Positions 12,367 to 63,095 of a stretch of 64,000 bases of DNA are shown here, one piece after another. This DNA is from Tubulanus polymorphus (taxonomy: Eukaryota; Animalia; Nemertea). Made by a program: the position numbers and the translations under genes. The stretch is from assembly GCF_964204645.1 (NCBI RefSeq), contig NC_134030.1, forward strand, positions 18,374,210-18,438,209, given 5' to 3'. The stretch's first letter is position 1; each line of letters begins with the position of its first letter. Below the pieces are notes generated by a model. The model was not told the DNA's origin. It worked only from the letters and a program-made list of their open reading frames with translations, and searched no databases.

Positions 12367-12463
12367 ATGAAGAACTGGATCTGGTTGGTAATCGGTGTAA
12401 TTCTACTGCTGGAAATCTTGTTCAATTCAGAAGCTGTACCGGTACGAAATATGAGAAATACTG
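12367..12463 (+). CDS. Gene 2 leader (signal peptide) exon
   Basis: [33 protein letters not shown]|GTGAGT donor, phase 1. Confidence 0.85.

Positions 12464-63095: not shown

Follow-up and report, generated by a model that had tools for sequence, protein, structure and literature searches.

A predicted immunoglobulin-NACHT receptor gene with four serial A-B cassettes in the nemertean Tubulanus polymorphus: old positional duplicates, gene conversion and patches changing at a nearly neutral rate

Introduction

NLRs are cytosolic sensors, and to our knowledge only sea-cucumber genes have been studied so far as membrane-anchored NLRs. Several receptors of the immunoglobulin superfamily (IgSF) have modular or clustered genes. 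Arthropod Dscam picks one exon per array of alternatives that code for the same half-domain. Alr1 and Alr2 of Hydractinia are defined by allelic hyperpolymorphism and homophilic binding. The primate KIR/LILR receptors are encoded by tandem IgSF genes with shared ectodomain modules, different tails and phase 1-1 Ig exons. Intronic repeats are where unequal crossing-over and gene conversion reshape these genes, and their signalling is coupled through ITIM/ITAM.

The closest described design to the gene reported here is AjNLRC4 of Apostichopus japonicus, in which a transmembrane (TM) anchor joins extracellular Ig domains to an intracellular NACHT; the protein reportedly binds microbes via its Ig part and drives phagocytosis (PMC8699970; also PMC13133943). 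AjNLRC4 was described as a membrane pattern-recognition receptor with two Ig-type domains and two predicted TM segments, reportedly without LRRs (PMC8699970). Our literature search found no paper on nemertean Ig-NLR genes.

Here we analysed a 64-kb stretch of DNA (18374210-18438209; hereafter the window) from the 268-Mb assembly of the nemertean Tubulanus polymorphus. Positions without a unit are those of the window. As a whole, the explanation that we regard as likely combines one Ig-NACHT gene, old positional cassettes, frames held by gene conversion and constraint, patches evolving at an approximately neutral rate, and cassette change driven by a minisatellite. The gene anatomy is solid and is covered by existing annotation. 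There is good support for the evolutionary reading, in which the cassettes are old and positional, gene conversion has acted and the patches evolve at a roughly neutral rate, while an immune-receptor function and minisatellite-driven shuffling are what we infer.

Results and Discussion

A single gene with eleven phase 1-1 domain exons

The interval under study is the ectodomain-coding part of a single 61-kb gene, LOC141906641, which is already annotated in RefSeq with two isoforms, X1 (XP_074652015.1, 2188 aa) and X2 (XP_074652016.1, 2186 aa). These XP_ records are computed models, and the inclusion of all cassettes in one mRNA is predicted. Exons were searched singly; for any joined sequence we turned to the stored RefSeq proteins. 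The exon order on the plus strand is signal peptide, A1-B1-C1-A2-B2-A3-B3-A4-B4-C2-D and TM exon, as listed below (J2 to J4 are counterparts at the paralogous locus J, with tree support in brackets).

12367-12463 (+): exon 1, with the start codon, the signal peptide and a phase-1 donor; equals residues 1-32 of RefSeq P0081
12557-12850 (+): A1 exon, Ig domain, 98 codons, phase 1-1 (from DNA borders, AF2 and VIA)
13076-13402 (+): B1 exon, Ig-like by Cys/Trp spacing only (DNA borders)
16110-16445 (+): C1 exon, conserved Ig-like domain with a weak Pfam C2-set_2 match
34610-34900 (+): A2 exon, sister of J2 (100/96)
35312-35641 (+): B2 exon, sister of J2 (100/97)
36394-36684 (+): A3 exon (DNA borders)
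37055-37384 (+): B3 exon, sister of J3 (100/99)
57450-57740 (+): A4 exon, sister of J4 (100/99)
59468-59797 (+): B4 exon (DNA borders)
60022-60357 (+): C2 exon (DNA borders)
61923-62192 (+): D exon, membrane-proximal domain with 2 Cys and N-glycosylation motifs, without a Pfam family
62351-62449 (+): transmembrane exon with a hydrophobic 23-residue TM segment
62541-62585 and 63051-63095 (+): two small cysteine-rich cytoplasmic exons (splice sites and phases)

Each of the domain exons (11/11) has a length divisible by 3, phase 1-1 and canonical AG/GT borders as read from the DNA, and the TM exon at 62351-62449 is likewise phase 1-1. The borders thus bore out the original prediction that eleven phase 1-1 domain exons leave any subset in frame. 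The same prediction of one modular receptor with four A-B cassettes agrees with the RefSeq model P0081, which strings together all 11 exons, and every peptide quoted in it was found in its place in a plus-strand frame. P0081 and P0096 each hold the 11 domain exons in genomic order, followed by TM and NACHT. The proposed span of 12367-62449 was right at its start, which is the signal-peptide exon, but 62449 is the end of the TM exon and not of the gene.

A DNA search that began 10 kb ahead of the window and ended 18 kb past it revealed only one copy of the signal-peptide exon. Because one RefSeq model spans the whole interval and the signal-peptide and TM exons are both alone, we treat the locus as a single gene. 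A division of the window into two or three separate genes was rejected, since these 92 kb hold one signal-peptide exon and one TM exon.

Upstream of the start codon, an exon at 5563-5877 (+) shares 44% identity with domain C and is probably part of a different family member or of the end of the upstream gene region. G+C content is higher (43%) in the first 4 kb of the window.

A NACHT module downstream of the ectodomain

Beyond the window, the gene continues with exons near 66293-66385 and 66478-66522 and then with a NACHT exon at 70364-73083 (window-equivalent positions), which is a single exon of 932 codons. Its match to PF05729 (NACHT) reached 55.8 bits against a cut-off of 26.7, and it carries Walker A (GKT) and Walker B motifs as well as a weak NLRC4_HD2 match. 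The signal-peptide, ectodomain, TM and NACHT exons join in frame by their phases and splice sites. The original prediction was correct for the IgSF receptor part of the gene content, but missed the continuation into the NACHT exon. In the C-terminal region a leucine-rich periodicity of ~28 residues was seen by eye only; no LRR was found there in Pfam at E < 0.01, and a PDB sequence search with residues 1700-2186 gave no match. Pfam also offered no family for domain D or the juxtamembrane stretch, and none for the long helical tail that sister genes carry.

Read from the exons, the product would be a type I membrane protein by its predicted topology, with a signal peptide, the modules (A-B-C)-(A-B)-(A-B)-(A-B-C)-D, a TM helix, a cysteine-rich juxtamembrane stretch, a NACHT NTPase and a C-terminal LRR-like region.

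Comparison with described receptors

The RefSeq model P0081 holds the AjNLRC4-type set of features in one polypeptide, namely a signal peptide, an extracellular Ig part, a TM anchor and a NACHT that is intracellular by predicted topology. The Ig ectodomain, the membrane anchor and the intracellular NACHT are thus common to both proteins. In LOC141906641, however, the ectodomain is built of eleven modules, there is only one TM, a cysteine-rich stretch lies next to the membrane and the LRR-like C-terminus is long; the gene also sits in a family of dozens of copies. The likeness is one of architecture, and an independent origin of the two genes by exon shuffling is likely. By analogy with AjNLRC4, the ectodomain would bind an extracellular ligand, microbial or non-self, and clustering would drive oligomerisation of the intracellular NACHT, as has been proposed for AjNLRC4. 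The immune or non-self role that had been suggested for the receptor is plausible, its cytoplasmic part being a NACHT module. A large nemertean family of surface Ig plus NACHT proteins supports the view that membrane-anchored NLRs arose more than once in animals.

With canonical cytosolic NLRs the gene shares a NACHT above the Pfam cut-off, Walker A/B and the weak NLRC4_HD2 match, and its C-terminal region shows the leucine-rich periodicity seen by eye. Where those proteins carry a CARD, PYD or BIR effector domain, however, this gene encodes a signal peptide, an ectodomain and a TM. Like arthropod Dscam1, it is an IgSF receptor whose exon modularity could diversify the ectodomain. In contrast to Dscam1, whole two-domain cassettes lie in series and are all present in the longest models; the sequence similarity is that of generic Ig domains only, and no FN3 family occurs in the Pfam results for LOC141906641. 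The Alr genes of Hydractinia likewise make up a large cluster on one chromosome; they encode lineage-specific IgSF type I membrane proteins and undergo domain shuffling and exchange between paralogues, but no sequence relation to Alr was found, and the cytoplasmic NACHT is unlike the Alr tails. Neither a fibrinogen-related nor a chitin-binding domain, as in FREP and VCBP, was among the Pfam families of the LOC141906641 protein. The original remark that the protein is none of Alr, Dscam, FREP or VCBP is in keeping with the Pfam results, which hold only Ig and NACHT families, and with the A-B profile search, which gave no relative beyond generic Ig. KIR/LILR belong to an unrelated lineage but likewise combine shared ectodomain modules with different cytoplasmic tails; in the nemertean family the tail can be a NACHT, a long helical region or a short stretch rich in cysteine, in place of coupling through ITIM or ITAM.

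Domain folds and location of the variable patches

In the AF2 model of A1-B1, the A half formed an Ig sandwich with a pLDDT of about 86 (78-92 over residues 1-100, eight strands). The leading Foldseek matches of A were all IgSF. Superposition on Ig domains of SYG-2, CD22, LILRB1 and CEACAM1 gave VIA Z values of 8-9.2 and an rmsd of 2.2-2.8 A over 82-89 residues. C30 and C78 of the A domain are invariant and provide the B-F cysteine pair of the two-sheet IgSF sandwich. The A exon alone scored 21.4 bits with Pfam Ig_2 against a cut-off of 27, and the precomputed families of the whole RefSeq protein are PF07679, PF13895 and PF08205. On the strength of the model, we assign the A domain to the immunoglobulin superfamily.

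For the B domain the AF2 model had a pLDDT of 41 alone and below 50 in the A-B model. Pfam C2-set_2 matched with an E of 0.07, a PDB profile search returned nanobodies only (E about 1), and hhalign gave a probability of 0.1% for B against domain C. The C20-W35-C81 spacing fits an Ig domain, and the Atlas look-alikes are mostly Ig families, with scores of only 0.84-0.88. Together, the Cys/Trp spacing and these weak look-alikes suggest that B is Ig-like.

On the AF2 model, the A patch runs from the end of strand C to the E-F loop and takes in C' and E together with the C-C' and C'-E loops. It forms one edge of the sandwich that touches both ends of the domain, and the BC loop varies moderately. 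The description of the patches as CDR-like was not upheld for A, because the patch lies on the C-C'-E stretch and not at the BC/FG tip.

A gene family and a paralogous locus with the same layout

The genome contains at least 32 A, at least 33 B and at least 24 close C exons of this family, almost all on one chromosome (18.06-18.43, 20.4-20.6 and 21.68-22.82 Mb). DNA comparisons covered 24 of the at least 32 cassettes; the other 8, including a recent tandem pair at 20.49 Mb, are represented by RefSeq proteins only. Cassette number varies among the members. The canonical P0002 and P0004 consist of one A-B-C-D, other paralogues are A-B-D, A-B-A-B-D or A-C-D with short tails, and many paralogues have a long helical tail without NACHT. 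LOC141906641 and its paralogue have the longest ectodomains among the family members retrieved, which points to growth by in-frame cassette duplication. When 1.84 billion representative proteins were searched with the A-B profile, the full-length matches were all T. polymorphus proteins from this chromosome, and beyond these only generic Ig matches, such as hemicentin, were obtained. The family can thus be called lineage-specific, as had been proposed, and this search showed no clear orthology to a known gene.

Several members show further arrangements. P0083-P0093 and P0098 (21.68-22.8 Mb) have an A-B-C-D ectodomain and a cytoplasmic region of 900-1200 residues without a Pfam family. P0098 has both this region and a NACHT, and P0003 has the region and a NACHT with no ectodomain. 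P0100 (LOC141906812, ~20.495-20.498 Mb) contains two A-B cassettes that are ~96% identical in one gene, apparently a recent in-frame cassette duplication.

The paralogue of the window gene, LOC141906708 (locus J, L005-L008), lies on the minus strand at 22.258-22.298 Mb, 3.9 Mb away. Within 12 kb it has the ten-exon order A-B-C-A-B-A-B-A-B-C, the same as in the window. DNA trees paired the cassettes of the window (W) and J position by position: W1 with J1 (97/88 in the A tree, 100/99 in the B tree), W2 with J2 (100/96 and 100/97), W3 with J3 (B tree, 100/99) and W4 with J4 (A tree, 100/99). The introns of the two loci are colinear at 85-90% identity, the exon dS is about 0.15, and the main difference between the genes is two insertions of 17-19 kb. 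The position-by-position pairing and the colinear introns indicate that the four-cassette layout predates the duplication of the locus. The layout is therefore old and conserved.

Every cassette has stayed open since the duplication, and the frame pN/pS of the positional pairs is 0.09-0.54. C1 has a pN/pS of 0.12 against its positional paralogue. With open frames and frame pN/pS values in this range, no cassette looks like a relic. The four A-B cassettes are thus best read as old internal duplicates, four fixed domain types in series under purifying selection.

Two other readings of the exon structure were weighed against this one. In the first, the annotation would be an artefact: the middle cassettes (A2-B3) would be defunct exons left behind between introns full of transposons, and the true mRNA would be SP-A-B-C-D, as in the canonical paralogues. 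The canonical members do carry a single A-B-C-D, and the introns flanking A2-B3 are 18 and 20 kb long with satellites and transposons; two transposon-loaded introns of this size (18-20 kb) could impair splicing. The four middle exons, however, are open with canonical splice sites, their frames are constrained as given above, and the compact paralogue J retains the same exons, so that we consider relic exons highly improbable. The other reading concerns splicing, for which combinatorial or mutually exclusive use of cassettes had been suggested. Mutually exclusive splicing finds no support: the cassettes are all in series in the longest RefSeq models, and nothing points to such a choice. Combinatorial use of cassettes fared differently in the two genes. 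For LOC141906708, in-frame skipping is annotated in computed models, in which X2 is without A2-B2 (208 residues) and X3 is without A1-B1-C1 (319), exactly at exon borders. For LOC141906641, RefSeq lists no cassette-skipped isoform, and its only two isoforms, X1 and X2, differ by 2 residues at the TM-exon acceptor, where alternative acceptors lie 6 nt apart. Although every exon subset would be in frame, it seems to us doubtful that the phase 1-1 design yields isoforms with different cassette subsets from LOC141906641 itself.

Selection on frames and patches

Selection was assessed by Nei-Gojobori counts on 24 A and 23 B copies, for all pairs, for 11 sister pairs and for 5 deeper pairs. pN was 0.24-0.34 in the patches and 0.08-0.10 in the frames, the patch values being biased upward because the patches had been picked after their variability was seen. 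The pN/pS values were as follows (all pairs; 11 sister pairs; 5 deeper pairs).

Frames A/B: 0.37/0.45; 0.41/0.38; 0.41/0.53
A patch: 0.81; 1.09; 0.79
B patch 1: 0.65; 0.83; 1.04
B patch 2: 1.55; 1.03; 1.41

In independent-pair tests the frames were significantly below 1 (P from 5e-4 to 7e-11), and no patch differed significantly from 1. The pattern of variable patches amid constant frames, as originally described, holds across the family (24 A and 23 B copies). The B patches are almost unchanged between positional paralogues, and patch 1 of B2 has 0 differences from J2. The patches are also nearly identical within the young tandem array at 21.7-22.1 Mb. Since the locus duplication, the B patches have gained 11 nonsynonymous changes at ~270 sites, compared with 40 at 769 sites in the frames. 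As the patch pN/pS is ~1 and the patches are conserved between positional paralogues, ongoing hypervariation is not demonstrated. The patches are relaxed or mixed-selection segments that hold old divergence between domain types, although a pN/pS near 1 across a patch could hide a minority of positively selected sites.

Gene conversion and mosaic divergence

Synonymous divergence was found to be uneven along the exons, with pS ranging from 0.03 to 0.56. The first 13 A codons have values of 0.03-0.06, against 0.28-0.40 for the A patch and 0.36-0.52 for B patch 1, and there are further dips to 0.08-0.15 within the frames. In eight independent deep pairs, the pS of A was 0.12 at codons 1-16, 0.19 at codons 17-45, 0.31 in the patch and 0.29 at codons 73-97, and the difference between codons 1-16 and the patch was significant (Fisher P 3e-4). 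The PHI test detected recombination within A, B and C (P < 0.0005 each). The mosaic pS and the PHI result together indicate that part of the frame constancy is homogenisation by gene conversion. The rest reflects constraint at the protein level, for example at A codons 73-97, where pN is 0.10 at the pS of 0.29, and at B codons 81-93 (pS ~0.5, pN ~0.15).

The picture of constant frames and variable patches thus has three causes. Purifying selection at the protein level acts on the frames. Gene conversion among paralogues erases synonymous differences too, most strongly in the first 16 A codons, which are part of an 82-bp minisatellite. The patches on the C-C'-E stretch change at a roughly neutral rate and retain the old divergence between types.

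Two other accounts of the patches have to be set beside this combination. In the original prediction the patches were ligand-contact surfaces under continuing diversifying selection, with cassettes that widen the recognition repertoire. The family is indeed large, clustered and lineage-specific with an NLR module, patch motifs can be shuffled by mosaic exchange, and pN/pS is two- to threefold higher in the patches than in the frames, reaching 1.4-1.55 in B patch 2, where 42 nonsynonymous but 0 synonymous differences were counted among the window's four copies, over pairs that are not independent. However, the patch values of 0.8-1.4 are never significantly above 1 in any partition, they are inflated by the post hoc choice of the patches, and the near-constancy of the patches between positional paralogues at dS ~0.15 and in the young 21.7-22.1 Mb array speaks against continuing diversification. 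We therefore judge this account rather unlikely, and diversifying selection was not confirmed. It is slightly easier to imagine, while still less than probable, that the A and B domains serve chiefly as spacers, fixing how long the stalk is, and that the patches are unconstrained edge segments whose differences mean nothing functionally. The patch pN/pS is indistinguishable from 1, and indels are concentrated in the A patch, whose place on the model (C' and E strands with the C-C' and C'-E loops) is an edge at which Ig domains often tolerate change. Against such free drift, the B patches have been no faster than the frames since the duplication (11/~270 vs 40/769), and each cassette position has retained its own signature in both loci. 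We thus prefer the combination of constrained frames, gene conversion and old divergence between types. The general lesson is that paralogues with constant frames and variable patches can arise by gene conversion and old type divergence, without ongoing diversifying selection.

A minisatellite at the A-exon junctions

The 82-bp minisatellite unit consists of the last 25 intron bases, with the acceptor, and about 55-57 of the first bases of the A exon. The following arrays and remnants were located in the window.

34265-34609 (+): 82-bp minisatellite with decoy acceptor units, abutting A2
36097-36393 (+): 82-bp minisatellite abutting A3
57104-57449 (+): 82-bp minisatellite abutting A4
16914-17166 (+): upstream minisatellite remnant in intron C1-A2, colinear with the array start in the compact paralogue J
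37856-38131 (+): upstream minisatellite remnant in intron B3-A4, the split-off end of an array

The remnants are the upstream ends of the same arrays, from which they are separated by large insertions (17 kb of satellites and repeats in intron C1-A2). An array lies directly 5' of 3/4 of the window A exons and of all A exons fetched outside the window (20/20), with 1 to at least 18 decoy units per A exon in the latter. Genome-wide, 181 units were found and every place listed is an A locus, while a reversed-pattern control gave none. The arrays are 90-97% alike between loci, more than their flanks, and pS is lowest in just that part of the exon which the unit spans. Further 82-bp arrays were seen in L009 (45-1603) and in L007/L008.

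The 57-nt exon-like part of the unit is phase 1-1 and is open in 9/10 of the window decoy units with an exact acceptor motif. Its use as a mini-exon was rejected, since the 25-nt gap is too short for an intron and the repeats are absent from all fetched proteins.

The junction minisatellite is an unusual candidate for what drives the gain and loss of cassettes. Whole cassettes would be added or removed by unequal exchange within these arrays, and the phase 1-1 of every exon would keep such changes in cassette number in frame. The near-identical A-B pair of P0100 looks like a recent example of such an exchange. A far-reaching extension is that minisatellite and phase 1-1 exons form a germline device for cassette shuffling, in which unequal exchange and conversion would add, delete and swap whole A-B(-C) modules, both inside single receptor genes and among the roughly two dozen of them. 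Individuals would differ in the number and combination of cassettes, and each would have its own surface Ig-NACHT repertoire for non-self recognition; we regard this as speculative and quite unlikely. The decoy acceptors might also tune the inclusion of cassettes.

Repeats in the two large introns

Within the large insertions lie a 31-bp satellite and other repeats, along with two transposons, one a non-LTR retrotransposon and one a PIF/Harbinger element. Both transposons are in intron B3-A4.

50076-53248 (+): non-LTR retrotransposon with an RVT_1 reverse-transcriptase ORF
53566-56115: PIF/Harbinger element with DDE_Tnp_4 (-) and a Myb/SANT-like ORF (+)

The 31-bp satellite (consensus begins CGCGACAATTCATT) occupies 18497-21154, 22262-22524 and 25862-26835 in intron C1-A2, in arrays of up to 2.7 kb. 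It is open in all three reading frames for hundreds of codons, which gives rise to many spurious ORFs. In the same intron, tandem repeats of 50-51 bp that contain a palindrome (TTAGGGTTT...AAACCCTA) occur twice, at 17167-17454 and 24400-24559, and lead into an ATT microsatellite.
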